Sequence record: NC_048016.1
Direction: 5' to 3' (one strand)
DNA: 64,000 nucleotides
The notes under the pieces were generated by a model. The model saw nothing but the letters and a program-made list of their open reading frames with translations. It had not been told where the DNA came from and did not search any database. The position numbers and the translations under genes are program-made. Positions within the stretch are counted from its first letter, which is position 1; each line of letters begins with the position of its first letter. Below are positions 27,745-46,065 of this stretch, piece by piece.

Positions 27745-28437
27745 ATGGATTTAAAATTTGACAGACGTGCGATACTGATACCGGTGGCCGGACTCGCCGC
27801 AGGCATCGCAAACGGCGACACGTACCGCTACCGTGAAGACCAACGCAAGGCCATGGTCGAGTGCCTGCTGCGTGACGTATTAGAAGAGAGCGGGGGTCGG
27901 GAAGATGCGCACACTCTTTCGACGCCCCGTGGTAAACTGGGTCGGCATTACTTTGAACTCAGCCGCTACTACGAAGAAGACAACCCGTCTTCCGAGGTCT
28001 GCAACGCCTACAACCGCTCGGTGATTAAAGCCCGCATCAAAGCACTGCTCGCCAAACACAGTCTCTATGAGGCGTGTGTTGCCGAAGACCAGTCTGTTGT
28101 GAATAGCATCAGTGCTGGCTACACCGTGACATGGTTCGGGAAAAAGGGGAAACACCTGCCGTTGCAACACAAACACATTGTGGTGACGTGGGTGAGACCA
28201 AGGCTGGATTACCAGTCTATGGATGTGACGACTTTTATTGAACGTGTTATTACAGCGCTCGGAAAGAAATATCCACGCGAGCAGGTAAAGCAGACAGTAC
28301 ATGCGATACCGCTTGGCGTCTTACTCAGTTCTTATCCACACGGTGCGATGGCGGAAGACCTTCGCGAACATCCGTACCAAACGTGGGATGGACTATTACA
28401 GTTCGTGACTTCACGACTGAAAGGGGGTTTAAAATGA
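27745..28437 (+). CDS. Hypothetical protein (230 aa)
   Basis: ATG 27745 behind AAGGG. Confidence 0.7.
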   Translation: MDLKFDRRAILIPVAGLAAGIANGDTYRYREDQRKAMVECLLRDVLEESGGREDAHTLSTPRGKLGRHYFELSRYYEEDNPSSEVCNAYNRSVIKARIKALLAKHSLYEACVAEDQSVVNSISAGYTVTWFGKKGKHLPLQHKHIVVTWVRPRLDYQSMDVTTFIERVITALGKKYPREQVKQTVHAIPLGVLLSSYPHGAMAEDLREHPYQTWDGLLQFVTSRLKGGLK

Positions 28438-28913
28438 TTGTGATGTCTATCGAGATTGACAAAATCTCACCCGACGTGTATCCGGAGCTGGCTGAGTTCC
28501 TTGCCGATGCCAACAGCATTCGCAAAGAACCCTTGCAGGTCTTGATGGCCGTCGAAGATGACATCGTGCACGGGATGGTGATTTACGAACCGGGTAACAT
28601 CGTTTACCTGTACGTGGTCCCGGAATCCCGTCGCAGTGGTGTGGCGCGTTTCCTTGTGAAGCACGTTGCCTCACAGTCGCCGGGTAAGCAGATGACGGCG
28701 ATAGTCAATCCCGACGCGGTCGATGCCCAGTGTTTCTTTTTGCAGAACGGTTGGCGAATAGAGAATTGGTTCAAAGGCCTCGATGATAAGTGGTATTTCC
28801 GTATGACGACTAAGGCGACACAACCGGCTCAGTCCCCGCCGGTTGAAGTAGGATTGGCCCGGTTTGCGAAGACGGTTCCAATCTTTATTTCGGTGGGTAA
28901 CAAAATAATATAA
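28434..28913 (+). CDS. GNAT-family acetyltransferase (159 aa)
   Basis: LYVVPESRRSGVARFLV acetyl-CoA motif A; AQCFFLQNGW motif B. Confidence 0.82.
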   Translation: MIVMSIEIDKISPDVYPELAEFLADANSIRKEPLQVLMAVEDDIVHGMVIYEPGNIVYLYVVPESRRSGVARFLVKHVASQSPGKQMTAIVNPDAVDAQCFFLQNGWRIENWFKGLDDKWYFRMTTKATQPAQSPPVEVGLARFAKTVPIFISVGNKII

Positions 28914-28927
28914 AACTCACGGGAAGT

Positions 28928-29422
28928 ATGAAAATGCAGCGTGTCGTCTATGAAACACGTCAACAGTGTGATAGCGGTGTGGAAGTTATCTGCGTTACTG
29001 AAAAGATAGCCGATTGTGACCTTGACCTTATTCGGTCGACCGTCCGCGGTCAGCCTGTCAAGATAATCCAAAGCACCGCCCTTAAAATTGCTTTACCTAA
29101 ATCTACACCAGCAATACGACCTAGTCGAAAGGCAGACTACCAAGCCCTGAGACAGCACTTCCTTAAACACTATCGCCGCTCGCTCTGGAAGGACGTGGTG
29201 ATGATGTTGGTGGATGAGTTTATCAAGGACTTGGAATGGGAAGTGATTTTAGCCGGTTCCGGCTTTAAGAGCAAACCGCCTGCCTATCACTGGGAACGTT
29301 TCAAAAAACAGTACCTCAAAACGATGCCAAACTGCCGCTACACGTGGAGCACCCGTAACATGCTCCCCCGACTAGAGGAGCAGCCTTGGCTTCAAGCTTA
29401 CCTGAAAGAGGATAAAAATTGA
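28928..29422 (+). CDS. Hypothetical basic protein (164 aa)
   Basis: Long ORF in operon. Confidence 0.65.
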   Translation: MKMQRVVYETRQQCDSGVEVICVTEKIADCDLDLIRSTVRGQPVKIIQSTALKIALPKSTPAIRPSRKADYQALRQHFLKHYRRSLWKDVVMMLVDEFIKDLEWEVILAGSGFKSKPPAYHWERFKKQYLKTMPNCRYTWSTRNMLPRLEEQPWLQAYLKEDKN

Positions 29423-29814
29423 TGCGTTCTGTATTGGCTGTTTTGCTGTTATTGGTATTTTCTCAGACTGCACATGCGGACTTCAATCCAAGTGAGATGC
29501 TGGGATACCAGCCTAACAGTCCCGACGAACCGAAAGTCAAATTCGAAGCGACCGACCGTGCGCGTACGGTAGCGGAAGGCGGGGATTTTGCCGTTGTCAA
29601 CTTCGGAAAAACAGACACCTGCCCGGGCGGTGGCTTTTACTTGGTAAACACCAAACGTAAAATCTACCAGTTCATCGACGCGGGGAGTTGTTATGAGAAC
29701 GTACGTGCAGACCTCTCGACGCCGCCGACTTCAATGAAGACGATTGCGACGCAAGTTCTCACGTTCTATATTGGCAAAACCATTATAGCCCGCTACCCGC
29801 TCTACGGGTACTGA
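29422..29814 (+). CDS. Secreted/periplasmic protein with signal peptide (130 aa)
   Basis: MRSVLAVLLLLVFSQTAHA-D, classic SPase I A-x-A site; two Cys. Confidence 0.75.
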   Translation: MRSVLAVLLLLVFSQTAHADFNPSEMLGYQPNSPDEPKVKFEATDRARTVAEGGDFAVVNFGKTDTCPGGGFYLVNTKRKIYQFIDAGSCYENVRADLSTPPTSMKTIATQVLTFYIGKTIIARYPLYGY

Positions 29815-29820
29815 CCGTCT

Positions 29821-29856
29821 CCCTGCTTACTTCGGTAGGCAGGGGGCTTTTCTTTT
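29821..29856 (+). terminator. Intrinsic terminator
   Basis: CCCTGCTTAC-TTCG-GTAGGCAGGG then T tract. Confidence 0.8.
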
Positions 29857-29868
29857 CGGAGCCGGACT

Positions 29869-30954
29869 ATGACTTTTATCATTACCCGCACCCGAACACA
29901 CCAACAGTCGCTATTGGATTTGGTGAACTATGCCAATGACGATACGATCGATACGCCTTTGACGGTAGCGAACACCGGTATCACAAAGCGTGGGGAACTC
30001 TACCCGGGTGTTTACGGGCTGCGACTCACTAACCTGTCGAAGGAAGACGACACGGTCGATGTGCAACACACCAAGATTCAACTCGGTGATATCCTCCTCT
30101 TTAGCAAGGCAGACTTAAGTTGGTTCAACCCGCTTAACGTTCCGTCAAGCAACCGGGTGTGGGACAATGCTGCACAGGCGATGGTTGAGAATGCCATTGC
30201 CAAAATGGGCTTTAACATCAGTAAAATCTTTACCCCACCGAATGCGTGTTTCGTCACGTACAACACGGATGAAAGCGGGTGGTTCATTACGTTTCGTTGT
30301 GACTCGTTCGTGTTTGAAGAAGTATTTCTCTATCGCCTGCCGCACTACTTCGGCGAGTTTGTAACGAACAAAGATTTGGTGGGTTTTCAGTTCAATCCAG
30401 TGGGGAGCACGGAGCCACCCATTCCAGATGCGTATCCTGTGGTGTTTACGAAAGCGCCGTGGGATTTATTGATTGGGCTGGTTAACTTTGAGAACGGTTT
30501 CACGTTTGATAAGAACCAGTTTGCATGGAAGGACTTAACAGTCCTGAGCACGCCATCAGTGAAAGGCGGGGATACCGGCATCGATTTAGATTTGCTGGCT
30601 GAGCCTTCGGAGGTAATAGAAGACTGGGTGACCTTTACGTACAAACGTATGGCCCTGTCTGCGGTGTGGCCAAAGACACCGGTGTTAACCACGGCAGAGG
30701 TGGGGTTCAATCGCAATGACCGCACCATCGATGTCCCGACGTTAATCGCCACACTGGCAGGCCGCTTCTACCTCGACCAAAGCAACTATGGATTCACGTT
30801 TGATTACCTCAAACGTCGGGTAACGATTACCGCACTCAGCACCAACGTCGCCTTTACGGGGAGCGTACAGCTTACTGTTGCTATCACGATAGGGTTGGCC
30901 GAACTGGTGACGGTGCGGATGTTAAACGGCTTTGAGCCGGGCAAGTTTTACTGA
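29869..30954 (+). CDS. Tail/baseplate paralog-family protein with duplicated module (361 aa)
   Basis: SLLDLVNYAND and DLLIGLVNFENG begin two copies; ends MLNGFEP. Confidence 0.6.
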   Translation: MTFIITRTRTHQQSLLDLVNYANDDTIDTPLTVANTGITKRGELYPGVYGLRLTNLSKEDDTVDVQHTKIQLGDILLFSKADLSWFNPLNVPSSNRVWDNAAQAMVENAIAKMGFNISKIFTPPNACFVTYNTDESGWFITFRCDSFVFEEVFLYRLPHYFGEFVTNKDLVGFQFNPVGSTEPPIPDAYPVVFTKAPWDLLIGLVNFENGFTFDKNQFAWKDLTVLSTPSVKGGDTGIDLDLLAEPSEVIEDWVTFTYKRMALSAVWPKTPVLTTAEVGFNRNDRTIDVPTLIATLAGRFYLDQSNYGFTFDYLKRRVTITALSTNVAFTGSVQLTVAITIGLAELVTVRMLNGFEPGKFY

Positions 30955-30962
30955 CGTGCCCC

Positions 30963-31000
30963 TACCCTCTCTTCGGAGGGGGTAAAACCTCTTATTTTTT
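30963..31000 (+). terminator. Intrinsic terminator
   Basis: TACCCTCTC-TTCG-GAGGGGGTA, T tract somewhat displaced. Confidence 0.65.
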
Positions 31001-31035
31001 GCGTCACCCGCGTTGGTTATAGGAGGTACGCAACC

Positions 31036-31602
31036 ATGAAAAAATATAAACTGGCTATTATTGGCTCACGTGAGACCGATCAAGAAACCATGCAAGAAAT
31101 GTATGCCCAATTACTGGCCGGTATTAATATCCTGTTGGAGAAAGGGTACGACCTTGAAATCACAAGCGGCGGCTGCTGGAAAGGTCCCGACCAGTTGCAG
31201 TTTATGCTGGCCCGGTACTTTAAAGGCGACCCCCGCCTGACCTTTATTTGTTATCTCCCCGATGACAAGAAGCTGTGGCTGAAAGAAAAGAACCCGTTTG
31301 TGGACTTCCGGGTAATTGAGCAAACTCCGCTGTATCAGGAGATTGTACGTTCGCTGCACCCGGCACCCGATTACCTGAATGACTGGGCGCACAAACTGCA
31401 CGGACGTAACTTGAATATCATTATGGGTGATGATTTGCACACGCCATCGGATGCTGTGTACTACTCAGCACCGATCAATAAGCAAGGCAACCCAACTGGC
31501 GGTACGTTTATGGGCGTACAATACGCGAAGTCCGTCAACGTCCCAACCTTCCATCACGCAAACCAAGGCCAAGACTGGCTGGCGTCCTTGCGTTTATTAT
31601 GA
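31036..31602 (+). CDS. SLOG-superfamily (DprA/Smf/YspA-like) nucleotide-binding protein (188 aa)
   Basis: LAIIGSR, ITSGGCWKGPDQ, GGTFMGVQYAKSVNVPTF motifs; AGGAGG RBS. Confidence 0.75.
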   Translation: MKKYKLAIIGSRETDQETMQEMYAQLLAGINILLEKGYDLEITSGGCWKGPDQLQFMLARYFKGDPRLTFICYLPDDKKLWLKEKNPFVDFRVIEQTPLYQEIVRSLHPAPDYLNDWAHKLHGRNLNIIMGDDLHTPSDAVYYSAPINKQGNPTGGTFMGVQYAKSVNVPTFHHANQGQDWLASLRLL

Positions 31603-31618
31603 TTCCTCTGAGGCACAC

Positions 31619-31882
31619 ATGCAATCAACATCTCTGCTGCAAAGATTGAAGGAGGCGTTCTGTCCGCCCCCGCCTAAACCTGCGCCGATTCAACAGCCGG
31701 TCGAATGGCAAGGGACGGAGAAGGAGTTCTTCGAGTATCTGGATAAACGTGACTTCCTGTCCGTGCCGGATAATGCAGAACGTCCACGCGTGATTAACTA
31801 CGTAGACGGGAAGACCAACGAGCTGTTCGCCGTTGCCGTCCGCTGGCCAAATCGTTATTACTACTATTTAATCGAAACCTGA
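31619..31882 (+). CDS. Hypothetical protein (87 aa)
   Basis: ATG 31619 behind GAGG. Confidence 0.6.
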   Translation: MQSTSLLQRLKEAFCPPPPKPAPIQQPVEWQGTEKEFFEYLDKRDFLSVPDNAERPRVINYVDGKTNELFAVAVRWPNRYYYYLIET

Positions 31883-31903
31883 TAACGGTTCGAGGGTAGA
31901 CTC

Positions 31904-32902
31904 ATGTCATTAGAACAAGATTTTGAAACGTTGTGGGAGAACTACGATACCGTGGTCGCACTCGAGTCTATCGGTGTGGGTATTGACAACCCTGCAATCC
32001 AGTCTATCGCCAAGCGCTGGGGGTTAGATGATGTGGTGTTAGTGGCGGGCGAATCTGCTCGTGATAAAACACCTAAGAAAACCTCTTCTCTGTTGGCGCA
32101 AGTCTTCAATGACTTTGCTGGCTTCTTCGGTACCCGTTATGTGGAACTCCTGAAGAAGATGAACAACCAAGCAGACCTGTTGGAGAAGCACGCCACTGAC
32201 ATGGAATCGCGCCTGAATAAAATCAGTGCGTTGCATGCCCATGAAGTGCCAAGCGGTAGTTGGACATCCAAAGTCTGTTTTGAAGACCTGCCCAATTTCA
32301 AAGAGTGCATTAAGCTTGCGAACTCTGCTGATGGGTTAGAAGCCGTGGTGAAGCAGTACACGGTTCTGACCCGCCAGATTGTGTTCTCGCCGGTGATTGA
32401 CCGCCGTAAGATGGAGAACGGGGAGCTGACCAAAATTGGTTACAGTTCCAACGCCGCTATCCATCGTGCGTCAGGGTATTTAGGTCGCCTTGGTGAGGCA
32501 GATGTTCAAGCCCGTCCACTGGCTGGCAATGTGATTGTTGTCACCCGGGGTGAAGGCGAGAAGGGCAAGGTGCAGTTTGCCGTGGCGCACGGTGGCGATT
32601 ACAAAGGTGAGATTCCCTCGCTGGAGCTGTCCGAGTGTAAGAAGGCACTGGGCGCAGTTCGTACCATCGCTAAAACGCTGCGTAATCGCGGTGCGAAGAA
32701 TGGCGTGTTTGGTTACAGCGGCATCTACGAAGAAATCGAGAAGATGAAAGCGGGGCTCAAACAGCACGAAGGTGCCGAGCTGCGTCTGGCCACCCTGCGT
32801 TACAAAAACGCACTGGAACTCGAGAATGCATTCACTACCGCACTTGACCGTGTCGGTGATGGTTTAATTAACTGGGTAGCCGCAAGTATTAAAGCCGGTT
32901 AG
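31904..32902 (+). CDS. Probable internal head protein, paralog A (332 aa)
   Basis: Acidic N-terminal propeptide with VALE-S and VAGE-S maturation-type sites; paralog of next gene. Confidence 0.6.
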   Translation: MSLEQDFETLWENYDTVVALESIGVGIDNPAIQSIAKRWGLDDVVLVAGESARDKTPKKTSSLLAQVFNDFAGFFGTRYVELLKKMNNQADLLEKHATDMESRLNKISALHAHEVPSGSWTSKVCFEDLPNFKECIKLANSADGLEAVVKQYTVLTRQIVFSPVIDRRKMENGELTKIGYSSNAAIHRASGYLGRLGEADVQARPLAGNVIVVTRGEGEKGKVQFAVAHGGDYKGEIPSLELSECKKALGAVRTIAKTLRNRGAKNGVFGYSGIYEEIEKMKAGLKQHEGAELRLATLRYKNALELENAFTTALDRVGDGLINWVAASIKAG

Positions 32903-32914
32903 TAGGAGACGACG

Positions 32915-34057
32915 ATGTCAGCGCTCGAGAAAGATTTGGAAATCCTGAACGACGATTGGGATCGTTTAGTGGCATTAGAAGCACTGGGCGCTGGCCCCGA
33001 CTATCCTGCGATTGCGGCGATTCGTCAACGGTGGTGTTTGTCAGACGACACAGGCCACTTTGTTGCCGGTGAATCTAACGCCATGGAACGGGCCCAAGTC
33101 TTACACGACGAGGCCCGGTTCGGCAGTATCCGTAACGTCTATACCCGTAAAGCCGCAGGGGCGGTTGGTAAAGGCGTGGCAAACGTCGCCGGTGCTGCCG
33201 GACGGGTTGCTGGGAAAGGTGTGAAAGCGGCCGGTGTTGCAGCGGGTCGCACATCCCATCAGCTGGCCATGCGTTTTGTGGACTTCGCCGATGAGCTGGC
33301 CAAAGATACCACGAAGAAAATCAAACACGTGGTGAACAAGGCAACCCTTTTAGAAAACCAATTGCACAAGCTCCGCAAGGCCCTCAGTGAGGCAGGCGAG
33401 TTAGGCAAGGGGACGGTGGAAGCCGGTAAGTGGACTTCGAAGGTGTGCGTTGAGGATAAAGTCGACCTCGACAAGACCATTGAGTTTACCAACCACACCA
33501 AGGCGATTGAAGCCCGTGTCGATGAGTTCACGGTGCATGTCCGTAGCGTGATGAAAGGCAAGAAGGAAATGGAGGACGGGACGGTTGCTAAACTGGGTCG
33601 GTCAACCAACTGGGCGGTCAAGCGCGCATCGGGTATCATTGGTATCGTGAGCCCTGCGAAAGAAATCACCGCAACCTGTTTCGGTGGGAACGTGATTATC
33701 GTTGAGCGCATTAACGGTAACATTACCTACGCGGTCGCCAAAGACGGTGACTACGGGCACACCATGCCTGCCCTGTCTAAGGCAGATTGCGAACGGGCGT
33801 TGGACGGTGCTGAGAAAGCCATTGAAACATTACGGGCACTCGGCGTGAAACGCAAAATCACCGGCTTTACGGCCGTGGATGAAGAAGCAGAAGCGCTGAA
33901 GGCTGACCTCAAGAACGTGGCCCTGAAAGACCTGCGGCGTGCCACGGGCTACTACAAGTCCGCCATGGCACTGAACGACGGGTTTGTCACCGCGATGGTT
34001 CGCTCAACCGAGGGTCTTCTGGAGTACGTCCGCCAGTCTATCAAGGAGGGGCAATGA
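32915..34057 (+). CDS. Probable internal head protein, paralog B (380 aa)
   Basis: VALE-A and VAGE-S sites; alignable along its length with 31904..32902. Confidence 0.6.
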   Translation: MSALEKDLEILNDDWDRLVALEALGAGPDYPAIAAIRQRWCLSDDTGHFVAGESNAMERAQVLHDEARFGSIRNVYTRKAAGAVGKGVANVAGAAGRVAGKGVKAAGVAAGRTSHQLAMRFVDFADELAKDTTKKIKHVVNKATLLENQLHKLRKALSEAGELGKGTVEAGKWTSKVCVEDKVDLDKTIEFTNHTKAIEARVDEFTVHVRSVMKGKKEMEDGTVAKLGRSTNWAVKRASGIIGIVSPAKEITATCFGGNVIIVERINGNITYAVAKDGDYGHTMPALSKADCERALDGAEKAIETLRALGVKRKITGFTAVDEEAEALKADLKNVALKDLRRATGYYKSAMALNDGFVTAMVRSTEGLLEYVRQSIKEGQ

Positions 34058-34521
34058 TTATTAAAGTTGCCCTTTCGGTTACGTCACCACTTGGGAAGAA
34101 GTACCAAGACCAGATACTCACGCAGTATCGAAGTCTGTTTGCGACGATGCAACCGTTGGTCAAAGAAATCAACGGGCGTCACGCATACCGCCAGTTCGGG
34201 AGTCTCGCTGCAAAGTGGGGTCCCGGGGAATGCATGGCATTGGCGATTGATGAGTCAACGGAAACGTTGCTCGGTTTTCTACATTTCTCATACAGCACCT
34301 CAGGGGATCGGTTCCTCTGGATTCACAACTTCTTCGTGTCTGAATCAGAACGGGGACGGGGGACAGGCAAGGCATTAATGGAGTGGACGCAAAACTACGG
34401 CCGGACAAAAGGCTGTCAGTGGGCACAACTCTATGTGTTGGACAATAACACCTCCGCACAACGCCTGTATGAATCCATGGGCTTTCAAACCGAGAACCGG
34501 GGTATGACTCTGGAGCTCTAA
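34054..34521 (+). CDS. GNAT-family acetyltransferase (155 aa)
   Basis: FFVSESERGRGTGKALM, LYVLDNNTSAQRLYESMGF: textbook GNAT motifs. Confidence 0.92.
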   Translation: MIIKVALSVTSPLGKKYQDQILTQYRSLFATMQPLVKEINGRHAYRQFGSLAAKWGPGECMALAIDESTETLLGFLHFSYSTSGDRFLWIHNFFVSESERGRGTGKALMEWTQNYGRTKGCQWAQLYVLDNNTSAQRLYESMGFQTENRGMTLEL

Positions 34522-34522
34522 C

Positions 34523-35113
34523 ATGACACAGTTTCGCACGGTACCGCACCACAGTGGTCAACGGTTTACGTTTGGTATCAAACGCTTTGCTATTCCCCAT
34601 CGTCCGGGTTGGAAAACCGTTCGGGCCATGGGACAGTTCTGGCGTTTGCCACCGGGTCTTTCGCAGTACCTAACGGATGACGATGTACAACGGTTGGCCA
34701 CCACCTGTGATGCACGACAGCGTGCGAGCTTTGAGGTCGTGTGCCAAGCAACAGAGATGCGCAAGACGTGTAATGCGTGTGAGCAGGGGATTTACTGGAC
34801 GGGGCAGAAAGCGTTCCAAGTCGGGGCAGTCGATGACACCGCCAAGGTGACACCGTGGCACGGTGAAATCAACGGGGTTATCTTTACAGGCATTCGCATC
34901 ACCACCGGTGAGCATGATTACCTGTTGGCCACCGACAAAGACGTTCCCATGGCCACGTTCTACAAATACCTGATGTTCTACTCCCACTACATTTCAAAGC
35001 GGTCTTTGACCACCACTGATGCGGGCTACTCAATTAGCAGACTGCCCTATCGATCGGACAAGAGGCTGGAGAAATGTTCTATCGAGACCTTGAGCGCTTT
35101 GCCGAAGCATTAA
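34523..35113 (+). CDS. Hypothetical protein (196 aa)
   Basis: Coupled to the GNAT gene (1 bp gap). Confidence 0.65.
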   Translation: MTQFRTVPHHSGQRFTFGIKRFAIPHRPGWKTVRAMGQFWRLPPGLSQYLTDDDVQRLATTCDARQRASFEVVCQATEMRKTCNACEQGIYWTGQKAFQVGAVDDTAKVTPWHGEINGVIFTGIRITTGEHDYLLATDKDVPMATFYKYLMFYSHYISKRSLTTTDAGYSISRLPYRSDKRLEKCSIETLSALPKH

Positions 35114-39069: not shown

Positions 39070-39375
39070 ATGGGCTTATTATCTAAACTGTTCGGCGAAG
39101 AAACCACCACCACTTCTGTTAAGAATCCACTGGACAACACTATCGTTGTTGACAAAGACCTTGGCTTCTTTGCTGAAGAAGTTGCACGTATCGGTGTTGC
39201 ATTATCTCATGCACACTCTCGTAGCGACAGCCGCAAAATGGCACGCTGCTTAGCGGCACTGCGCTTACTGCGCGAAATGAACGAAGACTCTGGTTTCCAG
39301 TTGGCAATGCCTAAGAACCTGAGCAAATATCGTATGCGTAAAGCACGCGGCGATTTCCCTTTCCTGAATGTATAA
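39070..39375 (+). CDS. Early hypothetical protein (101 aa)
   Basis: AAGGA RBS; biased codon usage. Confidence 0.75.
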   Translation: MGLLSKLFGEETTTTSVKNPLDNTIVVDKDLGFFAEEVARIGVALSHAHSRSDSRKMARCLAALRLLREMNEDSGFQLAMPKNLSKYRMRKARGDFPFLNV

Positions 39376-39403
39376 ACTAATCATCCCCCTCAAGGAGTTC
39401 ACC

Positions 39404-39610
39404 ATGTTTAATGCAGTTCTGTCCATCGTCAGCCGTTTCACCACTAAAGAAGTAGTAGAAGTTGCTGCTCCCGTTGTGGAGCCGCGCCCGGAGAATTTCG
39501 GCGTGCGTCTGGCTGTGCTGTGCACAGACCTGCATCAAGCAATGGCTGATAACCGCTGGAAGGATGTCGAAGTTCTGCGCAAGCAGATTGACGCCCTTCT
39601 GGGTAAATAA
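39404..39610 (+). CDS. Small protein with UVR-like C-terminal hairpin (68 aa)
   Basis: ATG 39404 behind AAGGAG; LCTDLHQAMADNRWKDVEVLRKQIDALL. Confidence 0.65.
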   Translation: MFNAVLSIVSRFTTKEVVEVAAPVVEPRPENFGVRLAVLCTDLHQAMADNRWKDVEVLRKQIDALLGK

Positions 39611-39614
39611 AAGA

Positions 39615-39640
39615 GGCACCTTCGGGTGCCCTTATTTTTT
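39615..39640 (+). terminator. Intrinsic terminator
   Basis: GGCACC-TTCG-GGTGCC then T tract. Confidence 0.78.
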
Positions 39641-39665
39641 CTGTAAATTGTAAGGAGTAATCACA

Positions 39666-40298
39666 ATGGATAATAACCAAACCAAGCGTATAGGTAATCG
39701 TCGTAGCAACCTGCCGATTGTGGGAGAGGTGGTGTATATAAGGGGTCTTCTTACAGAAGATTCTTTTGACCCTGCGAAAATTGAAAAGCGTGGCGGTGTC
39801 GTTAAGATGCTGGACTACAAAACAGGCGTTCATCTCCGTTTGTACCGGAAAGCCGTGGACTACATGCTCTCTCTGGCAGAGTTCGCGGACGGCTATAAAG
39901 CTGTCGGCATGGAATCCACTGTGGCGGTATCGGATTACTCAGCTCACATCGAGCAGCTTTTCGAGGCACTCGAGGCTGTCGAAACTGTGTCCGAAGGCAT
40001 TCCAACCACCCTTGCGGAGTCTGCGCAAGAAAACGTCCCCGGGTCAGAAAAGCAGCCAGCATTAACGTTGGAACTGGCGGAGGTGATGGCGTGGCTGAAT
40101 AACCCTAATGCGGTTAACGGCTTAACCCTAGAACAGGTCTTGGAACTGACCCAAGCGCTCCAAATGCAACTTGGCTACATCGTCGGGAAAGTTGGACTGT
40201 TGCATAACGAAGCGACGCGTCCCGAGCGTACCAGTTCACTGCTCGGCGGTAGTTCCCTACTCAGCCCTTGCGGTAGTAGCCAATCTTTTAGACTCTAA
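39666..40298 (+). CDS. Hypothetical protein (210 aa), possibly head-associated
   Basis: GTAAGGAGTAAT RBS; VGME-S, ALE-A and LAE-S resemble maturation sites. Confidence 0.65.
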   Translation: MDNNQTKRIGNRRSNLPIVGEVVYIRGLLTEDSFDPAKIEKRGGVVKMLDYKTGVHLRLYRKAVDYMLSLAEFADGYKAVGMESTVAVSDYSAHIEQLFEALEAVETVSEGIPTTLAESAQENVPGSEKQPALTLELAEVMAWLNNPNAVNGLTLEQVLELTQALQMQLGYIVGKVGLLHNEATRPERTSSLLGGSSLLSPCGSSQSFRL

Positions 40299-40334
40299 TA
40301 GACCCATCGACCTTTTATCCGTAAGGAGTAATCT

Positions 40335-40982
40335 ATGTTAACACCAGTCCAGTCTCTGTTAGATGTAACGTACGCCCCTGCCATCGCTGGCATGAAAGAT
40401 GGCGTAGAGCAATTTTTGACAACCGTCGAGAGCGTGCCTTTCGACCAGTTTGCGTATCTGAACGAAGACTTTGAAGTTGAGCAGCTCGCCATCTGCTTCT
40501 TGGATGCAGACGTTGTCAGTGTGGTTATCCAAGGGGGCTTAGATAAAGCGGCCATTAAGTCACTGACCAACTACTACACCAACGCCGTTGCGGTGCGTGT
40601 GTACTACAGCGATCAAGAAGATTTCCCGAAAGGCGATGACTGGTCTGTAGAGGGCCTGTCGTTCCTGATGGACAATCCACCGTTTGACGAATCCCTCCCA
40701 GCGTTCGAAGCGACGCAGGACGATGTGTTCGTTACCATCAAAGTCGGCGACAAGGCCATGCTCGGTACCCTGCTCAGCGACCTCAATACGTTCTCGGTCA
40801 TGGCAACCGGTGAATACCAGCCTGAGATGGAAAACGAACTGAAAGTGGCGATGGCTTATTGTAATGGGCAAGAGTGTCGCTTACTGGTACAAGCGTATCA
40901 CAACTCATGGATAAAGCCGATGCTGGACATGGGCTTTGAAGCAAACCGCTGGATTCTCAAGGCTGACTTCAACCACCTCTGA
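40335..40982 (+). CDS. Possible degenerate tandem GNAT-fold protein (215 aa)
   Basis: GTAAGGAGTAAT RBS; C-terminus CRLLVQAYHNSWIKPMLDMGF resembles GNAT motif B; no motif A. Confidence 0.4.
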   Translation: MLTPVQSLLDVTYAPAIAGMKDGVEQFLTTVESVPFDQFAYLNEDFEVEQLAICFLDADVVSVVIQGGLDKAAIKSLTNYYTNAVAVRVYYSDQEDFPKGDDWSVEGLSFLMDNPPFDESLPAFEATQDDVFVTIKVGDKAMLGTLLSDLNTFSVMATGEYQPEMENELKVAMAYCNGQECRLLVQAYHNSWIKPMLDMGFEANRWILKADFNHL

Positions 40983-41062
40983 TAATTTACAGCACCTACC
41001 GATGTTATAGCCGCCGCTGTCCGGTTAAAGACAGCCCCAACCTTAATTGAGAGAAAATAGAA

Positions 41063-41824
41063 ATGGCTAAAGTATTTGCGACCTACCAAGAGATGCAGCA
41101 GACAGTTGATGTCATGGCAACGATGATTTCCATCAACCACAAACGTCGGCTGGTTTTTTATCGTGAGAAAGCAACCAACCATTCTGTGCGCACCATCCGT
41201 ACCGCAATTATTGATCTGACAACAGACGTGGTCACGCCATTGCAGGCCTCGTTTAAGATGGACGGTCCGACCAATGCTCCATTGACCCCAATGGCGAAAT
41301 GGAAAGGGTTTCGTCATGCCTTCTCTAGGTTCTTCTTTACGCGTATTGCTCGTAAACCGGAGTTGTTGTTACTGGCGAACAACCGTGACCTCAACTTACT
41401 GGTAACGGAGCTGCCTGAGTTAGCGTATCTGTTGGAATTCAACAAATACCTGAAACGGGCCTGCTTCACGCACATCGCAGCAGAAGACATGGAGAGCAAG
41501 GACGGTTGGCCGACCTACTTTACGTGGTCATCAACGCACCGCCATCAACACAGTGTCCGCCAGATACTCGTAGGGCGTACACTGAAATGGCGTGGCAATG
41601 GTGTCAGCAGCAGTCTGCCGCATGTCAACGTTGAGGTTAATATCTCAAAGTACGGCATCACGGCGAAAGACATCGGTAAGATTCAATACCTGAGTTTTGC
41701 CTTGACCTATCCGGTTGCAGATTGGCCAAAGATTGACGATTTACTGCAAGACCCGCAGATTGAGCCACTGGTTGACCTGTGGTTATGTCCGCGTATTACT
41801 ATCGAGCCGAAGCACGCCGGTTAA
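41063..41824 (+). CDS. Hypothetical protein (253 aa)
   Basis: Long ORF in operon. Confidence 0.7.
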   Translation: MAKVFATYQEMQQTVDVMATMISINHKRRLVFYREKATNHSVRTIRTAIIDLTTDVVTPLQASFKMDGPTNAPLTPMAKWKGFRHAFSRFFFTRIARKPELLLLANNRDLNLLVTELPELAYLLEFNKYLKRACFTHIAAEDMESKDGWPTYFTWSSTHRHQHSVRQILVGRTLKWRGNGVSSSLPHVNVEVNISKYGITAKDIGKIQYLSFALTYPVADWPKIDDLLQDPQIEPLVDLWLCPRITIEPKHAG

Positions 41825-41855
41825 AGCGTGACCCTTACTCATTGGAGATAAAAGA

Positions 41856-42530
41856 ATGGCAACACTGGATTTCGTTAAGAAAGGTATGGCGATTGAAGAA
41901 CTGACAAAGAAGCCGAGCGTGGTAGAGCACCCTGAACTCCCAACGATTATGATGGCGGGACAGAAGCTGCTTCTGCTGAGCGACTCCGTTGCTAACATCC
42001 ACTTCATTGTGGCGGAAGCCGGCGGCTTTGTTACGCGTGTCTTCAACCGGGTAAAGCCTGTGGCTGATGGAAAGGCCACGCTCCTTATCTATCGTCAAAT
42101 CATTCGCGACGAACGCGGCATGTACTTCTTTAAAGTCTTGGCCAGTAAGCCTAAGGCGTTGGAAGCTTTCATGAAGCAAGACCAGCAGGGACTGATTGCA
42201 GCTTCACCGCTGTTCTACGGTCTGTGCCGGGCGTACGTGGAATCAGGACAACACCGCATCAGCGGTTTAGACACACGCGAACAGTGGTCTGCCCCGCAAT
42301 GGGTGGGTTCGCTGCGGGGTGAAGTGGCCGGGAAAGCCATTAACTTCAAACGCACCGTGGGTTATCGTCCTGCAACCAAAGATACACGTGTTGTCTATCG
42401 CTTCGAAGGCGCATTCGGAATGACCCTGACCTTAGCGCAGGACTTACCGGGTGTGTCGTGGAGCAAAGCTGCGGACTATTTAGCGTTGCCGAAAGTCACG
42501 GCAATTCTCAAAGAGTTCTACGAGCTGTAA
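41856..42530 (+). CDS. Hypothetical protein (224 aa)
   Basis: GGAGA RBS; terminator follows. Confidence 0.7.
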   Translation: MATLDFVKKGMAIEELTKKPSVVEHPELPTIMMAGQKLLLLSDSVANIHFIVAEAGGFVTRVFNRVKPVADGKATLLIYRQIIRDERGMYFFKVLASKPKALEAFMKQDQQGLIAASPLFYGLCRAYVESGQHRISGLDTREQWSAPQWVGSLRGEVAGKAINFKRTVGYRPATKDTRVVYRFEGAFGMTLTLAQDLPGVSWSKAADYLALPKVTAILKEFYEL

Positions 42531-42535
42531 TAAGC

Positions 42536-42570
42536 AGGCCACCTTCGGGTGGTCTTTTTCTTTTATTTTT
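42536..42570 (+). terminator. Intrinsic terminator
   Basis: AGGCCACC-TTCG-GGTGGTCT then T tract. Confidence 0.85.
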
Positions 42571-42592
42571 ACACTAACTCCCGAATGTATGT
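42567..42592 (+). promoter_or_regulatory. Bipartite promoter candidate TTTTAC-N15-TATGT
   Basis: Exact motif 31 nt upstream of the ATG at 42624. Confidence 0.55.
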
Positions 42593-42623
42593 ATCACGCT
42601 CATTATAATCTCAGGAGTCATTC

Positions 42624-43577
42624 ATGCCCATTATTCGACTGTCAGTCGGTGTGCTAAAAACCCAAGAGTTTGCACATCTGGCCGATAACCCCAAACTGTG
42701 GATGCGACTTAAGTCGCACGTTAAAGATGACGACATGCGCGTCTATGCCTTGGTTACCGCCGGTGGCATTCCCCAAGCTTACGCGGTGTGCAGTTACACC
42801 AGTGGGTCTACGTCGCTGCTGTGCAGTTACTTCGAAGACCTTATCCCGGCCAGCATTAACCGTCCGTTCTGGTTGGCGCTACTCGACTACACCGGCTTTG
42901 ACGTTCTGCGTATCGTTGCCCCGAACGACACCATCGGTGAAATCGTTAAGGGTTACGAGTTCAAACTGGTTGAAGAGATGTGGGTCGGTAACGTTACACC
43001 GTACCGTGGCTTCCCGGTCTCGGAGAACATCCACAGTGTCTCTGGTGATGCGTTCTATAAGCTCAGCACCGAAGATGTGGAAGACCTGCACAAACTCATC
43101 TGGGCGGCAACTGTCGCTGAAATTAATACCGATGTCTTGGAACGCCGTCTCACGCAGATGGTGCCCAACGGTATGGATGAAGTGCTGGGACGCACCGGGG
43201 ATTACCACTACGAAGTGTTTGTGCTGCGTGAACCCGAGCTGAAGAATAAAATCATTGGCTTTGCCTACTGCCACAAACTCGAACCGGGTTATATTGCGGT
43301 TGGGGGTCTAGGTGTTGCACAGGAGCACCAGAACAAACGTCACGGGCGTAAGCTTGCGGCGGCGGTATTGGCCCACGCCTCGGGGATGACCGATCAGGTG
43401 TACGCAACGGTGTTGTCGCAGAACCATGCGTCACGTCATCTGTTTGCGGATATCCTAAAGTTCAAACCGGTGATGTCCGTTTACGGCATCAGTCGCAACG
43501 AAGTGGATAAGCCTGTACCGCACGTAACCAAGGTCGCTGCTGAGAAGCGCGCCAAACAGATGCTGGGACTGTTATAG
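42624..43577 (+). CDS. Tandem GNAT acetyltransferase (317 aa)
   Basis: C-terminal half IIGFAYC..YIAVGGLGVAQEHQNKRHGRKLA..TVLSQNHASRHLF; N-terminal half a degenerate GNAT. Confidence 0.78.
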   Translation: MPIIRLSVGVLKTQEFAHLADNPKLWMRLKSHVKDDDMRVYALVTAGGIPQAYAVCSYTSGSTSLLCSYFEDLIPASINRPFWLALLDYTGFDVLRIVAPNDTIGEIVKGYEFKLVEEMWVGNVTPYRGFPVSENIHSVSGDAFYKLSTEDVEDLHKLIWAATVAEINTDVLERRLTQMVPNGMDEVLGRTGDYHYEVFVLREPELKNKIIGFAYCHKLEPGYIAVGGLGVAQEHQNKRHGRKLAAAVLAHASGMTDQVYATVLSQNHASRHLFADILKFKPVMSVYGISRNEVDKPVPHVTKVAAEKRAKQMLGLL

Positions 43578-43613
43578 TCCGAAGGCACGGCTAACTATTA
43601 TAAAAGGGTGAGC

Positions 43614-43640
43614 GACGCTCTGGATAGCTTACAGGGCGTC
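43614..43640 (+). promoter_or_regulatory. Hairpin in the dam leader
   Basis: GACGCTCTG-9 nt-CAGGGCGTC just before the GAGGT RBS; TATTATAA upstream. Confidence 0.4.
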
Positions 43641-43656
43641 TGACGAGGTATTTCGG

Positions 43657-44478
43657 ATGAAGCGATCGTTTATAAAATGGATGGGGGGTAAATCCCGTGT
43701 AATGGATGCGCTGAAGCACCATCTTCCCAAGGGGGACGTGTTCATTGAACCGTTCGTTGGCGGTGGGTCCGTGTTTCTGAACACCGACTATCCTGAATAC
43801 ATTTTGGCCGATTCAAATCCTGACCTTATTCAGTTAATGGAAGTTGCCGCATACCAGCCGGCGTTGTTAATTGAGCAAGCGAAGGTGTTGTTCGGCGGTG
43901 GTGAACGTGATGATTACATGGCGCACCGCAAGGCCTTTAATACCCGGGACGGGGAGCCGCACGTCAGGGCTGCCATGTTCCTGTATTTGAATCGCCATGG
44001 TTACAACGGTCTGTGCCGTTACAATAAATCTGGGGGGTATAACGTTCCGTACGGTCGCCACCCCAGTAAGCCGTATCTGCCCGAGAAGGAGATTCTCGAA
44101 TTTGCAGAGAAAGTGAAGAAAGGAAAGGTGACTTTCTTGTGTGCTGACTTTCAGCAGACGGTTGCACTCGCACAACAGCAGAATAAGCGTAAGGTCGTCA
44201 TCTATTGTGATCCGCCTTACGTACCCAGTAGCAAAACATCTTCCTTTGCGCAGTACCACAAAAACGAATTTGGTCAAGCCGAGCACCGTGCATTAGCCAA
44301 CGTGCTGATGGACGCCAGACGCTCGGGGGCCAAAGTGGTATTGTCAAACTCCGATACCGTTCTGACCCGCGATATCTATCACGGCTTTACCTTTCACACG
44401 GTAGAAGTCGGTAGACACATGGCGGCGAAGAAAGAGAAACGGGGTAAAGTAATTGAAGTGATTGCAACGCTATTCTGA
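43657..44478 (+). CDS. dam: DNA adenine methyltransferase, Dam family (273 aa)
   Basis: FIKWMGGKS, FIEPFVGGGSV, FLYLNRHGYNGLCRYN..GGYNVPYG, IYCDPPY, LSNSD. Confidence 0.95.
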   Translation: MKRSFIKWMGGKSRVMDALKHHLPKGDVFIEPFVGGGSVFLNTDYPEYILADSNPDLIQLMEVAAYQPALLIEQAKVLFGGGERDDYMAHRKAFNTRDGEPHVRAAMFLYLNRHGYNGLCRYNKSGGYNVPYGRHPSKPYLPEKEILEFAEKVKKGKVTFLCADFQQTVALAQQQNKRKVVIYCDPPYVPSSKTSSFAQYHKNEFGQAEHRALANVLMDARRSGAKVVLSNSDTVLTRDIYHGFTFHTVEVGRHMAAKKEKRGKVIEVIATLF

Positions 44479-44487
44479 GAGGTGCCT

Positions 44488-45318
44488 ATGCGAGTTTATG
44501 ATTTACGCGACCAAACCACACACCGTGAGAAGGTGAACTTCAACGGAGCAACGACCATGATAGGCAGTGTCTATCGGGCCGTCCAACACTTACTGGCGGG
44601 CAAGCTGGTGAGTTCGGAAGTGTTCCTTGTGGTCACCCGGGGTAACAACGCACAGATGATGTTCACCTGTGACCGTGATAACCGCTGTCTGTATATCCAC
44701 GGTGTGACACCTTTGGCGGACACGCCTTTTACAAATTGGAAGACACTGCTGAAGCACCTTGAGTGTGAGGTCGTGGATGTGACGTGTAACCCGCACGATT
44801 ATGAACGGCACGACGATTGCAGGAAGATGGGGTTGGTCAATGTCAGTCAGCGCGTCAAGATAGCGGTGGCGCGTCAAGCACCCCTGCCGGAGATGGTGTA
44901 CTGGCGATTGGATGAAATCAACCTCACGCAATCTGTCGAGCTTGGGCGCATTGCGCTGAACCGTTCGGGTAAGTTTGGTCAGTCCCTGCTTGAGGGCTTA
45001 GCCCTTGGCAATACCACCGGCGTTGTGGTACCCAATGATGCAGGCGACATCGTTGGGGCGCTGTTGTATGTTGATGGCGAAAAGGAAATTCAATCGGAGG
45101 GCGTCATCATTAATGCGGCCGCAGGTACCCCTGTGTACGTGCAGTGGTTTATGTTATTGATGAATGCTTTTATACGTGAAGCTAAGCGGTTACGTAAACC
45201 GGCTATCGCCTCCTTTGCTCCGGCAATCGATGTGAAAGTACCGATACCGCATGTTGAGACTACAGTTGTCACCGTCCACTTCGGTTTGGCTGGACGGGAG
45301 GCAGGCGCAGTCTTTTAG
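44488..45318 (+). CDS. Possible degenerate tandem GNAT-fold protein (276 aa)
   Basis: Two repeats of strand-strand-helix-strand pattern, CRKMGL and FIREAKRLRKPAI; no clear motif A. Confidence 0.45.
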   Translation: MRVYDLRDQTTHREKVNFNGATTMIGSVYRAVQHLLAGKLVSSEVFLVVTRGNNAQMMFTCDRDNRCLYIHGVTPLADTPFTNWKTLLKHLECEVVDVTCNPHDYERHDDCRKMGLVNVSQRVKIAVARQAPLPEMVYWRLDEINLTQSVELGRIALNRSGKFGQSLLEGLALGNTTGVVVPNDAGDIVGALLYVDGEKEIQSEGVIINAAAGTPVYVQWFMLLMNAFIREAKRLRKPAIASFAPAIDVKVPIPHVETTVVTVHFGLAGREAGAVF

Positions 45319-45327
45319 GAGAGACTG

Positions 45328-46065
45328 ATGATTAATGATATCACCGAGCAGGTTCTGCGTGGTGAGGGCATCGACCCTCAGTACGTGGATATGGTCAACG
45401 CGTGGCTCGCGCTGCCCGTTGAGCAGAAGACTGAAAAGCGTGTCTTCATTATCGCCAAAAACCGTTTGATGTTTATGGTTATCGACCGGGAGTTCTTAGT
45501 GGGTACTGTACAACAGTACATTGCCCTTAATGACGGCCCGGCGGATATGACGATGCTACCGGCGTATTTAGGTTTGCGTGAGATTCACCTTTATACCCAA
45601 CAGCCGTCACTCTATGAACCAGACGGATGGCGATTAAGCCGGGTTATCATGACGAAAGAAACCGGGTTCTCTACCTCGTTTCCTGTTTCTGTTGAGACGA
45701 ACGCAGTGCTCAGTGAAAACGAGTTATGGGATTTCTTAGTGCTGATGCGAGAACAAGGTCAGACGGAAGTGCTAAGAATGCTCGGCGAAGGTACGGCGTG
45801 TATCCATGTTTACCGTGATGGGTTAGAACGTGGGTTCATTGTAACAAACGTTGAGGGGCCACTGGGTCTCTTGGCAATGGTAGGCGAAGGTATACCGGCG
45901 TTCGACGCACTTATTCGGGCGTTTGACTATATTGCGGGTCAGCGGGGCTTTGGCACCGTCGCAGGCACTTACGGCAACCCCTTACTGGGTGTCGCTGCAG
46001 AAATTGGGTATGTACCCACACTCACCACTGTCATCCTGACAGACCATTTAACAGAGAAGGAGTAA
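45328..46065 (+). CDS. Possible degenerate tandem GNAT-fold protein (245 aa)
   Basis: RGFIVT..LLAMVG..FDALIRAFDYIAGQRGFGTV..AAEIGY pattern. Confidence 0.45.
   Translation: MINDITEQVLRGEGIDPQYVDMVNAWLALPVEQKTEKRVFIIAKNRLMFMVIDREFLVGTVQQYIALNDGPADMTMLPAYLGLREIHLYTQQPSLYEPDGWRLSRVIMTKETGFSTSFPVSVETNAVLSENELWDFLVLMREQGQTEVLRMLGEGTACIHVYRDGLERGFIVTNVEGPLGLLAMVGEGIPAFDALIRAFDYIAGQRGFGTVAGTYGNPLLGVAAEIGYVPTLTTVILTDHLTEKE

Follow-up and report, generated by a model that had tools for sequence, protein, structure and literature searches.

A probable family of diverged tandem-GNAT paralogs around an ordinary dam gene in SPN3US-like jumbo phages

Why does a phage carry six GNAT-fold genes in the neighborhood of a gene for a DNA adenine methylase? 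The question is raised by a 64,000-nucleotide stretch of DNA (the window) from the SPN3US-like Erwinia jumbo phage Wellington, a giant phage of fire-blight Erwinia. An initial annotation described an 18-kb GNAT expansion (28434-46065) and offered two readings, either a pathway of several subunits that modifies adenine or nucleotides or a battery of acetylases and decoys directed against host defenses. The analysis points to a family of diverged tandem-GNAT paralogs in SPN3US-like jumbo phages, with four members in Wellington. Because the array persists in relatives that do not have the methylase beside it, it is probably an accessory gene family, and a new DNA-modification machine is improbable.

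Transcription units and single GNATs in the window

The region comprises several units rather than a single system. Its features are as follows:

28434..28913, + strand: gp108, single-domain GNAT in a transcription unit separate from the dam operon (PF13673/PF00583, phrog_7861)
34054..34521, + strand: gp116, single-domain GNAT (PF00583, 6e-15)
39615..39630, + strand: terminator-like hairpin closing the unit upstream of gp128 (hairpin scan of the window)
40335..40982, + strand: gp129, two-domain protein of GNAT fold lacking the acetyl-CoA loop, acidic (pI 4.1), in the gp128-gp131 unit (AF2, Foldseek)
41063..42530, + strand: gp130 and gp131, basic (pI ~9.5) phrog_6820 paralogs (PHROG match)
42536..42555, + strand: terminator-like hairpin, 8 pairs and a T-run, upstream border of the dam operon (hairpin scan)
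42568..42593, + strand: promoter-like motif TTTACAC-N13-TATGTA (motif search)
42624..43577, + strand: gp132, tandem GNAT with a degenerate N-domain and a C-domain bearing the motif A-like loop QNKRHG (PF00583, PDB profiles, alignment)
43657..44478, + strand: gp133, D12-class Dam-family DNA adenine methyltransferase (PF02086, TIGR00571)
44488..45318, + strand: gp134, tandem-GNAT fold without the acetyl-CoA loop (Atlas structure, alignment)
45328..46065, + strand: gp135, tandem-GNAT fold with no conserved acetyl-CoA loop, acidic (pI 4.6) (AF2, Foldseek, VIA-align)
46068..46838, + strand: gp136 (92 aa) and gp137 (152 aa, pI 4.3), conserved proteins ending the operon (synteny)
46843..46868, + strand: terminator-like hairpin, 11 pairs and a T-run, downstream border of the dam operon (hairpin scan)
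46876..46901, + strand: second TTTACAC-N-TATGTA promoter-like motif, start of the next unit (motif search)

The true unit is the hairpin-bounded operon gp132-dam-gp134-gp135-gp136-gp137, which is conserved in four genera. Its genes are separated by gaps of 2-79 nt and its borders are the same in seven relatives; a hairpin of the 42536 type is also found 5' of gp132 orthologs in seven relatives. The TTTACAC-N-TATGTA motif has two matches in the window, with none expected, and a related motif (TTTTTAC...TGTG/TATGT) is present in relatives. Since gp132, dam and gp134 to gp137 are predicted to form one operon, they should be co-expressed. gp129 falls outside it, in the operon upstream. There, gp130 and gp131 give no evidence of a GNAT fold, and their phrog_6820 family varies from 0 to 4 copies in relatives.

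The methylase gene does lie between 42624 and 44488, as initially annotated. gp133 matches PF02086 (1e-59, 202.5 bits, cut-off 22) and TIGR00571 'dam' (264.4 bits, cut-off 114.85) over its full length, and is 43-49% identical to Dam of P2-like temperate enterobacterial phages. Compared with E. coli-type Dam and orphan D12 methyltransferases, the protein is ordinary and is unusual only in its position inside a GNAT-fold array. Its family membership suggests GATC specificity; GATC is depleted 3.2-fold in the window. The nearby dNMP kinase, at first considered atypical, proves to be an ordinary thymidylate kinase (PF02223, 45.8 bits, cut-off 27) in another transcription unit than the dam operon.

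The clear single GNATs recognized at 28434 and 34054 are indeed Pfam matches. Both are clade-wide, and as separate conserved genes in other transcription units they break up the supposed 18-kb expansion. gp108 barely exceeds the cut-offs for PF13673 and PF00583, matches phrog_7861 'acetyltransferase' at 4e-68, and is conserved in 62 phage records by tblastn, Derbicus and CR5 among them. gp116 carries the motif A loop RGRGTG, lies 3' of the genes for internal head proteins in each of the 10 relatives examined, and is 40% identical over its full length to phiEaH2 YP_007237670 (E = 3e-43). This protein and Caitlin YP_009292176, accessions that we confirmed from the supplement of PMC9992855, are experimentally active spermidine N-acetyltransferases (PMC9992855). 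Wellington gp116 is their syntenic ortholog and by that token most likely has the same activity, which we only infer because the assay detected no activity for the SPN3US ortholog (PMC9992855). The spermidine enzymes have no relation to the dam operon.

The whole Wellington genome contains five Pfam GNAT matches, three of them within 28434-46065. Relatives have 3-4 such matches per genome, so the richness that had seemed unusual for a phage characterizes the clade rather than Wellington itself.

Folds and cofactor loops of the array proteins

All six GNAT-fold assignments were borne out at the coordinates first given: gp108, gp116 and gp132 by Pfam, and gp129, gp134 and gp135 by predicted structure. 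Two-domain tandem folds are found in gp132, gp134 and gp135. gp129 conforms only in part, its N-domain being reduced and badly modeled. Thus, of the three double GNATs proposed to lack motif A, gp134 and gp135 stand, but gp129 is a reduced N-domain joined to a GNAT core rather than two full domains.

The PF00583 match of gp132 (4e-10) covers residues 194-275 only, in the C-terminal half as annotated, and its family matches PDB profiles of 7ypu and VipF. The motif, initially annotated as intact, is only near-canonical in Wellington: alignment gives Q-x-x-R-x-G (QNKRHG) there versus the canonical R/Q-x-x-G-x-G in Seoulvirus orthologs. gp132 is probably the active member of the array, a putative acetyl-/acyl-CoA-dependent N-acyltransferase.

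In Foldseek comparisons, suggested earlier as a check on all six proteins, the gp129 and gp135 models both match tandem GNATs in the PDB. The AF2 model of gp135 (pLDDT 87.5, pTM 0.74) finds only tandem GNATs among its best matches (2wpw at 8e-9; VipF with TM 0.53). VIA-align places model residues 1-242 onto VipF 0-283 (223 residues, Z 11.4), and its C-domain (120-241) onto RimI (rmsd 3.0 Å, 117 residues). The gp129 model is of only moderate confidence (pLDDT 65.8; residues 1-56 poor, 110-215 good), and matches VipF (2e-6), 3frm and other tandem GNATs, as well as AFDB GNAT clusters (1.6e-7) across residues ~51-212. gp134's own ESM-Atlas model aligns with two-domain GNAT clusters (TM 0.59-0.64, 226-253 residues). 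In BFVD, the gp135 model is matched by gp132, gp129, phiEaH2 gp107-type proteins and Derbicus gp103 (TM 0.52-0.67), with the Kwan orthologs of gp132 and gp129 giving TM 0.66 over 305 columns and TM 0.52/0.58, respectively. The best BFVD matches are nearly all same-clade phage proteins from array slots, which rank ahead of other viral GNATs.

At the sequence level gp129, gp134 and gp135 give no GNAT signal, and in family alignments the Q/R-x-x-G-x-G/A loop between β4 and α3 is absent or not conserved in all three. The idea of active and degenerate copies side by side agrees with this distribution, in which gp132 has the CoA loop. Canonical motif A is dispensable for CoA binding in some GNATs, and loss of the motif is therefore no proof of inactivity. 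Neither hhalign nor HMM searches found a significant sequence link among the gp129, gp132, gp134 and gp135 families, and it is fold and position only that suggest their paralogy.

Conservation of the array and competing explanations

Synteny was compared in 10 genomes from four genera. dam and gp134 are present in all 10 and gp132 in eight; the slot after gp134 holds a gene of the gp135 type, one of the SPN3US gp107 type, or both, and the gp107 type shares or takes over the gp135 position in other genera. From one genus to another, array slots change occupant or disappear. Erskineviruses have retained Dam, gp134 and a gp107-type gene but not gp132, the sole copy with a CoA loop. In Derbicus and CR5, the same locus reads TMK-GNAT-GNAT-orphan-gp136 homolog. 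Both Derbicus array GNATs match the gp132 profile (7e-23, 4e-16), with loops QRKGIG and RLKGIG, and the gp136 homolog is recognized at 2e-20. PF02086/D12 methylases have no match anywhere in the Derbicus genome, and none lies between the genes of the array region, the part of CR5 that was read. Mean identity between genera is 27% for gp132 and 28.5% for gp134, about half that of their neighbors (56% for Dam, 40-53% for others). Within genera, purifying selection acts on the genes of the tandem-GNAT type (dN/dS 0.10-0.21; gp134, 0.13; gp129, 0.21).

The best explanation, and taken whole a fairly probable one, is an accessory acetylase with non-catalytic paralogs, forming a host-interaction module that has an ordinary Dam inside it. 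gp132, with its motif A-like loop, would be the predicted active acyltransferase. gp129, gp134 and gp135, which keep the two-domain fold and have lost the pyrophosphate-binding loop, would most likely be acetyl-CoA-independent binding, decoy or partner proteins. The methylase may be a stand-alone Dam within an older GNAT array, placed there by insertion or lost from Derbicus-like phages, and would not be a subunit of a joint pathway with the GNAT-fold proteins. The array appears to behave as an accessory module, in that it diverges rapidly, its genes turn over from genus to genus and selection within genera is purifying; these features fit the second initial proposal, acetylases and decoys against the host. 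In infection it would likely acetylate or sequester a small amine or a protein, whether of the host or of the phage.

A Dam-linked hypermodification, in which gp132 is active, gp134 and gp135 are scaffolds or alternative-donor transferases, and adenine or the m6A produced by Dam is modified further to a Mom-like or new acyl adduct that shields phage DNA, is very unlikely. It draws on the common operon of Dam and GNAT-fold genes in four genera, on gp134 lying directly 3' of dam even for distant homologs with examined contigs, and on Mom being a GNAT-fold adenine modifier (PMC7824862). Yet the array occupies the same locus in Derbicus, whose genome has no Dam gene, and in CR5, with none in the region read; 466 phage records have the Wellington-type Dam family on its own, and nothing in the array resembles Mom in sequence or profile; a joint pathway with Dam, as first proposed, is therefore unlikely. 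The Erskineviruses that have Dam, gp134 and the gp107 type but not gp132 also argue against it, as do the nearest folds, which are protein and small-molecule tandem GNATs (VipF, CBG, WecD), the between-genus identity of the GNAT-fold genes at half that of Dam, and the ordinary thymidylate kinase in another unit.

The adjacency of dam and gp134 has a narrower interpretation. An exhaustive search of 1.84 billion proteins places the gp134 family in nine clusters; all three distant homologs with contigs examined follow dam, and the family occurs only in Dam-bearing phages. At every locus examined (10 genomes, pEa_SNUABM_43 and three metagenomic contigs), gp134 is directly 3' of dam, with a 9-nt gap in Wellington and a stop/start overlap in L022. 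These loci all belong to one collinear clade, so the linkage could be inherited gene order. A role for gp134 as an accessory to Dam without catalysis of its own, for example in folding, phage-nucleus targeting or regulation, with the other tandem GNATs unrelated to Dam, is improbable. In one Vibrio jumbo phage, amid other neighboring genes, Dam overlaps the start of a 271-aa ORF, but no similarity between that ORF and gp134 could be detected; gp134 itself diverges to 28% between genera against 56% for Dam, and in Derbicus its slot is filled by a motif-bearing GNAT with no Dam. It is similarly doubtful that gp134 retargets or regulates the methylase as its non-catalytic tandem-GNAT partner, or makes a further adenine modification with gp132 and gp135; if true, either role would couple a pseudo-acetyltransferase with DNA methylation in a way not yet described, in jumbo phages that form a nucleus.

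A chance neighborhood of unrelated accessory GNAT-fold genes, sharing neither function nor origin, would account for the missing sequence similarity among gp129, gp132, gp134 and gp135, given that GNAT is among the commonest folds and that jumbo phages have many (PMC7824862; also the Pfam counts in relatives). We regard it as quite unlikely, since all four proteins have the rarer two-domain form, their slots are adjacent and in Derbicus hold recognizable gp132-type paralogs, and the gp135 model finds its best BFVD matches in this clade's array slots. Aminoacyl-tRNA transferases typically consist of two GNAT-like domains without motif A. The motif-less copies could by this likeness be active with another donor, such as the aminoacyl-tRNA of double-GNAT Fem, MprF, ATE1 and L/F-transferase, and Foldseek does list FemX (4.8e-4) and MprF/L-PGS (7e-4) for gp135 and MprF (1.4e-3) for gp129. 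For gp135, these matches fall 4-5 orders of magnitude below CoA-type tandem GNATs (8e-9), with TM of 0.30-0.39, and aminoacyl-tRNA transferases are not its closest structural neighbors; family alignments reveal no evident conserved candidate catalytic residues in the C-domains, and proteins of 215-276 aa are smaller than Fem/MprF catalytic domains. This makes another donor highly improbable.

With the accessory-module reading, several families of SPN3US-like jumbo phages known as 'hypothetical' gain a fold and an ancestry, among them Wellington gp129, gp134 and gp135 as well as the gp107-type family of SPN3US in its phiEaH2 member; the SPN3US gp106 family is tied in through gp134. Rapidly evolving, often swapped paralogs that accompany a single, probably active enzyme make good candidate factors for host takeover or counter-defense, in phages considered for biocontrol of fire blight and Salmonella. 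The tempting but weakly backed idea of a new Dam-coupled DNA hypermodification is set aside.

Comparison with known systems

Mom has historical ties to Dam through regulation. Like the array proteins, Mu Mom is phage-encoded and belongs to the GNAT superfamily, but it is a single-domain protein. Searches with hmmsearch, BLASTP and hhalign gave no similarity to it better than E = 0.16 or a probability above 0.2%; the array also differs in having no com-like gene and in persisting without Dam in Derbicus.

The closest resemblance is to tandem GNATs such as Legionella VipF, the clavulanate protein CBG/ORF14 (2wpw), MAB_4324 and the MshD/Eis type, which likewise carry a pair of GNAT domains on a single chain of 250-330 aa. 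The VipF/CBG type provides the best structural matches of gp135 and tops the gp129 list, and VipF is among the best sequence-profile matches of the gp132 family. The CoA loop of gp132 is confined to its C-domain, as is common in tandem-GNAT enzymes. Unlike the VipF/CBG type, gp129, gp134 and gp135 have no conserved CoA loop in either domain, and the phage families, 7-14% identical to known tandem GNATs, are found only in SPN3US-like phages.

Non-catalytic reuse of the fold has a precedent in nucleus-forming jumbo phages, where the C-terminal domain of chimallin (ChmA) is a GNAT fold without acetyltransferase active-site residues (PMC9365700). Chimallin is a shell protein of ~600 aa with one GNAT-like domain nearest to AtaT toxins, whereas the array proteins are small and two-domain, show no sequence relation to it and give no evidence of lattice formation. 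After chimallin, they represent a second instance in this phage lineage of a GNAT fold kept without its cofactor site.

GNAT folds with and without a cofactor loop

The window is 100% identical to NC_048016, the 244,950 bp genome of Erwinia phage Wellington (genus Wellingtonvirus), and window coordinates equal those of the record minus 62,000. Every gene under discussion lies on the + strand. Pfam and PHROG uphold the three GNATs that are detectable by sequence, and dam is full length:

28434-28913, +, gp108, single GNAT; PF13673 and PF00583 just above cut-offs, phrog_7861 at 4e-68
34054-34521, +, gp116, single GNAT; PF00583 at 6e-15
42624-43577, +, gp132, tandem GNAT; PF00583 at 4e-10, over residues 194-275 only
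43657-44478, +, gp133, full-length D12 methylase; PF02086 at 1e-59, NCBIfam TIGR00571 'dam' at 264 bits (cut-off 115)

The nearby kinase, initially described as an atypical dNMP kinase, is an ordinary thymidylate kinase (PF02223).

The initial annotation had also proposed that gp129, gp134, and gp135 are GNAT-fold proteins lacking the acetyl-CoA motif. Singly or as family profiles, they give no Pfam, NCBIfam, or PDB-sequence signal. A Pfam scan of all members of the gp134, SPN3US gp107-type, and gp130/gp131 (basic paralogues) families detects no GNAT signal, and PDB-sequence profile searches with these families return no match. Assignment of gp134 to PF04447 (dATP/dGTP pyrophosphohydrolase) was rejected: the match (E 0.003) is below cut-off and found in only 2 of 13 members, and the modeled structure is a GNAT.

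Structure models bear out the fold proposal. The AF2 model of gp135, built on a nine-sequence alignment, has two α/β domains (pLDDT 87.5, pTM 0.74), and Foldseek returns tandem GNATs throughout from the PDB (2wpw at 8e-9; VipF, TM 0.53; 3iwg, 3tt2, 3frm). Alignment with VipF yields Z = 11.4 across 223 residues (VIA-align), and the C-terminal domain (residues 120-241) can be superposed on RimI and other single-domain GNATs (3.0 Å, 117 residues). The gp129 model is weaker (pLDDT 65.8), being good for residues 110-215 and poor for 1-56; it matches the same tandem GNATs (VipF at 2e-6) as well as AFDB GNAT clusters (1.6e-7). For gp134, the ESM-Atlas model aligns with two-domain GNAT clusters at TM 0.59-0.64 over 226-253 residues. 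A Q/R-x-x-G-x-G/A loop is not conserved in the gp129, gp134, or gp135 family alignments. The gp132 family carries the canonical R/Q-x-x-G-x-G in Seoulvirus and Q-x-x-R-x-G in Wellington and Machinavirus. Both gp129 (pI 4.1) and gp135 (pI 4.6) are acidic, and gp132 and gp134 are near neutral. The Pfam and PHROG matches, structure models, and family alignments thus confirm the original observation with small corrections.

All-against-all BLASTP of the region finds gp129, gp132, gp134, and gp135 mutually dissimilar, and family HMMs run against every ORF of the Wellington genome find no further paralogues. Comparison of family alignments with hhalign is insensitive, scoring even the two true GNAT families at only 37%, and gives 28% for gp135 against the gp107-type family over the N-terminal 120 residues. 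In a BFVD search with the gp135 model, proteins of the same phage clade outrank every other viral GNAT: the Kwan gp132 orthologue (TM 0.66 across 305 columns), Derbicus gp103 (0.62), a phiEaH2 256-aa protein of the gp107-type slot (0.62), and the Kwan gp129 orthologue (0.52/0.58). Several further clade proteins of 213-215 and 264-267 aa were matched, as was a 314-aa protein that fits a Caitlin-type gp132 orthologue by length only. This ranking suggests that a single structural family, as modeled, occupies the slots around dam.

Conservation and organization of the dam operon

The whole region is collinear across the ten genomes compared, which represent four genera (Wellingtonvirus, Seoulvirus, Machinavirus, Erskinevirus). 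All ten contain dam, gp134, gp136, and gp137; gp132 is present in eight, phiEaH2 and Asesino being without it. Genomes carry gp135-family genes, gp107-type genes, or both in the slot 3' of gp134. The ~215-aa slot 5' of gp132 is filled by three families unlinked by BLAST, the gp129 type and two others, the latter two related at 95% by hhalign. Word-based searches return only five to six close relatives per query, an IMG/VR scan yields two loci, and the gp134 family profile, searched exhaustively against 1.84 billion proteins, finds only nine clusters. Contigs fetched for three of these nine, including the two weakest matches, each place the gene directly after a D12 methylase. In the papers searched on the virion and essential genes of SPN3US, its gp103-gp107 are not mentioned.

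Between genera, mean identity is 27% for gp132 and 28.5% for gp134, against 56% for Dam and 40-53% for eleven neighboring families; for the gp135, gp129, and gp107-type families, divergence or replacement has gone too far for BLAST to detect. Compared with a 93%-similar IMG/VR relative, dN/dS is 0.21 for gp129, 0.13 for gp132 and gp134, 0.10 for gp135, and 0.06 for Dam. Judged by these ratios and identities, the tandem-GNAT genes are functional and under purifying selection, with fast change over longer times, as in accessory host-interaction genes.

Terminator-like hairpins on the + strand at 39615, 42536 (42536-42555), and 46843 bound two units, gp128-gp131 (including gp129) and gp132-dam-gp134-gp135-gp136-gp137, the latter with intergenic gaps of 2-79 nt. 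Single GNATs gp108 and gp116 lie 14 kb and 8 kb upstream of the dam operon, in other units. TTTACAC-N-TATGTA follows the hairpins at 42536 and 46843 (two in the window, none expected). The same hairpin, with TTTTTAC...TGTG/TATGT, precedes the gp132 orthologue in SPN3US, SPAsTU, SNUABM_29, Caitlin, ChrisDB, Machina, and SNUABM_11; this arrangement recurs 3' of the gp137 orthologue in each of the ten genomes.

42536-42593 and 46843-46901, +, hairpin and promoter-like motif; also in stretches L007-L015 of relatives
46380-46838, +, gp137 family, closing the dam operon; strongly acidic (pI 4.1-4.3 in all ten genomes)

At unit boundaries of Wellington and all relatives examined, the hairpin is followed at once by TTTTTAC(A/G) and, 13-20 nt on, by TATGT or TGTG. 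This arrangement is a candidate for a phage promoter linked to the terminator before it. The gp137 family could be a putative DNA mimic.

Several further observations concern the same stretch. Seed and plant metagenome and metatranscriptome contigs are 95-99% identical to window 41800-47300. In RNA libraries, contigs of close relatives end at the 42536-42555 hairpin, with depth ~3-fold lower downstream; DNA carry-over is possible, and these breaks were not taken as evidence of transcription. The gp130/gp131 family (phrog_6820; window 41063-42530) is basic (pI ~9.5), occurs in 0-4 copies per genome (relatives L007-L014), and lies after thymidylate kinase in Wellingtonvirus and before it in other genera. 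Paralogous pairs also include the internal head protein genes gp114/gp115 (31904-34057; 33% identity, E 1e-57) and gp121/gp122 (33%, 3e-10). In window 1-64000, GATC is 3.2-fold depleted (77 observed, 249 expected) despite the phage's own Dam; CCWGG (13 vs 135) and CTAG (24 vs 249) are each ~10-fold depleted, and GTAC, CATG, and TCGA are at expectation.

Array and dam apart, and other GNATs of the lineage

In Erwinia phage Derbicus and Cronobacter phage CR5 (Derbicusvirus), the neighborhood is retained, running from the internal head protein and a gp116-type GNAT through three conserved genes to thymidylate kinase. After the kinase come two GNATs (323/285 and 289/285 aa), an orphan (296/295 aa), and an 88-aa gene:

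L028 31436-34513, Derbicus array
L030 4111-7059, CR5 array

The Derbicus 88-aa gene is a gp136 homologue (2e-20); that of CR5 is known by slot and length only. No methylase lies between the array genes of either phage, and the whole 224-kb Derbicus genome has no PF02086 match. The Derbicus GNATs match the gp132 profile at 7e-23 and 4e-16, the second aligning with Wellington gp132 over both domains, and each carries a canonical loop (QRKGIG, RLKGIG). The N-terminal part of the orphan shows weak similarity to the N-domain of the first GNAT (24% over 94 aa, E 0.01). These methylase-free loci indicate that the array exists without dam; there, a motif-bearing paralogue takes the position of gp134.

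In Erskineviruses the reverse is seen, dam being retained and gp132 absent. The Dam family of gp133 spans 466 phage records; the nearest genes outside the clade belong to P2-like temperate phages (43-49% identity), none of which is among the 53 records with a gp134 homologue.

Among the single GNATs, gp108 has conserved counterparts in 62 phage records, Derbicus and CR5 among them. gp116 shares 40% identity over its full length, and its slot, with phiEaH2 YP_007237670. Assayed in E. coli without speG, the latter and its Caitlin orthologue acetylate spermidine; the SPN3US orthologue of gp116 showed no such activity in the same assay (PMC9992855). Pfam counts five GNATs in Wellington and three to four in each of its relatives; numerous GNATs in jumbo phages were already remarked by Iyer et al. 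(PMC7824862). Two of the Wellington GNAT genes lie outside the window:

genome 172868-173802, two adjacent single-domain GNAT genes; PF00583 at 5e-12 and 5e-7

This pair is related to the gp116 family by HMM (3e-7, 1e-5).

Function of the array and its relation to Dam

The initial annotation had proposed, as one of two options, a multi-subunit adenine or nucleotide modification pathway, with co-occurrence of dam and GNAT genes as one check. The two occur apart in Derbicus, CR5, and the Erskineviruses, and a search for similarity to Mu Mom found none; a modification system coupled to Dam is unlikely. We favor an old array of tandem-GNAT paralogues around dam, in which gp132, from its sequence, is the copy still likely to be a CoA-dependent acyltransferase, and gp129, gp134, and gp135, having lost the cofactor loop, probably act by binding. 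The array would be co-expressed with an ordinary Dam and mechanistically independent of it.

An independent array leaves the unbroken dam-gp134 adjacency unexplained, and this keeps alive the idea that gp134 is a partner of Dam. The Vibrio jumbo phage pVp-JHP1101 (L026 5992-8030) offers a lead: behind Dam lie a 271-aa ORF that overlaps it and a 92-aa ORF, with lengths like those of gp134 and gp136, in a quite different neighborhood (tail fibre and SMC genes). However, neither ORF has detectable sequence similarity to gp134 or gp136, and we consider a Dam partnership improbable, at a small but real chance.

The closest solved relatives (VipF, WecD, Eis, CBG) acetylate proteins or small amines. 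The array is a member of a known fold family, the GNATs, and the observation that drew attention to it is real and well read. The fold is already known in non-catalytic use within this lineage: chimallin, which forms the nuclear shell in related phages, contains a GNAT-fold domain that lacks active-site residues (PMC9365700).
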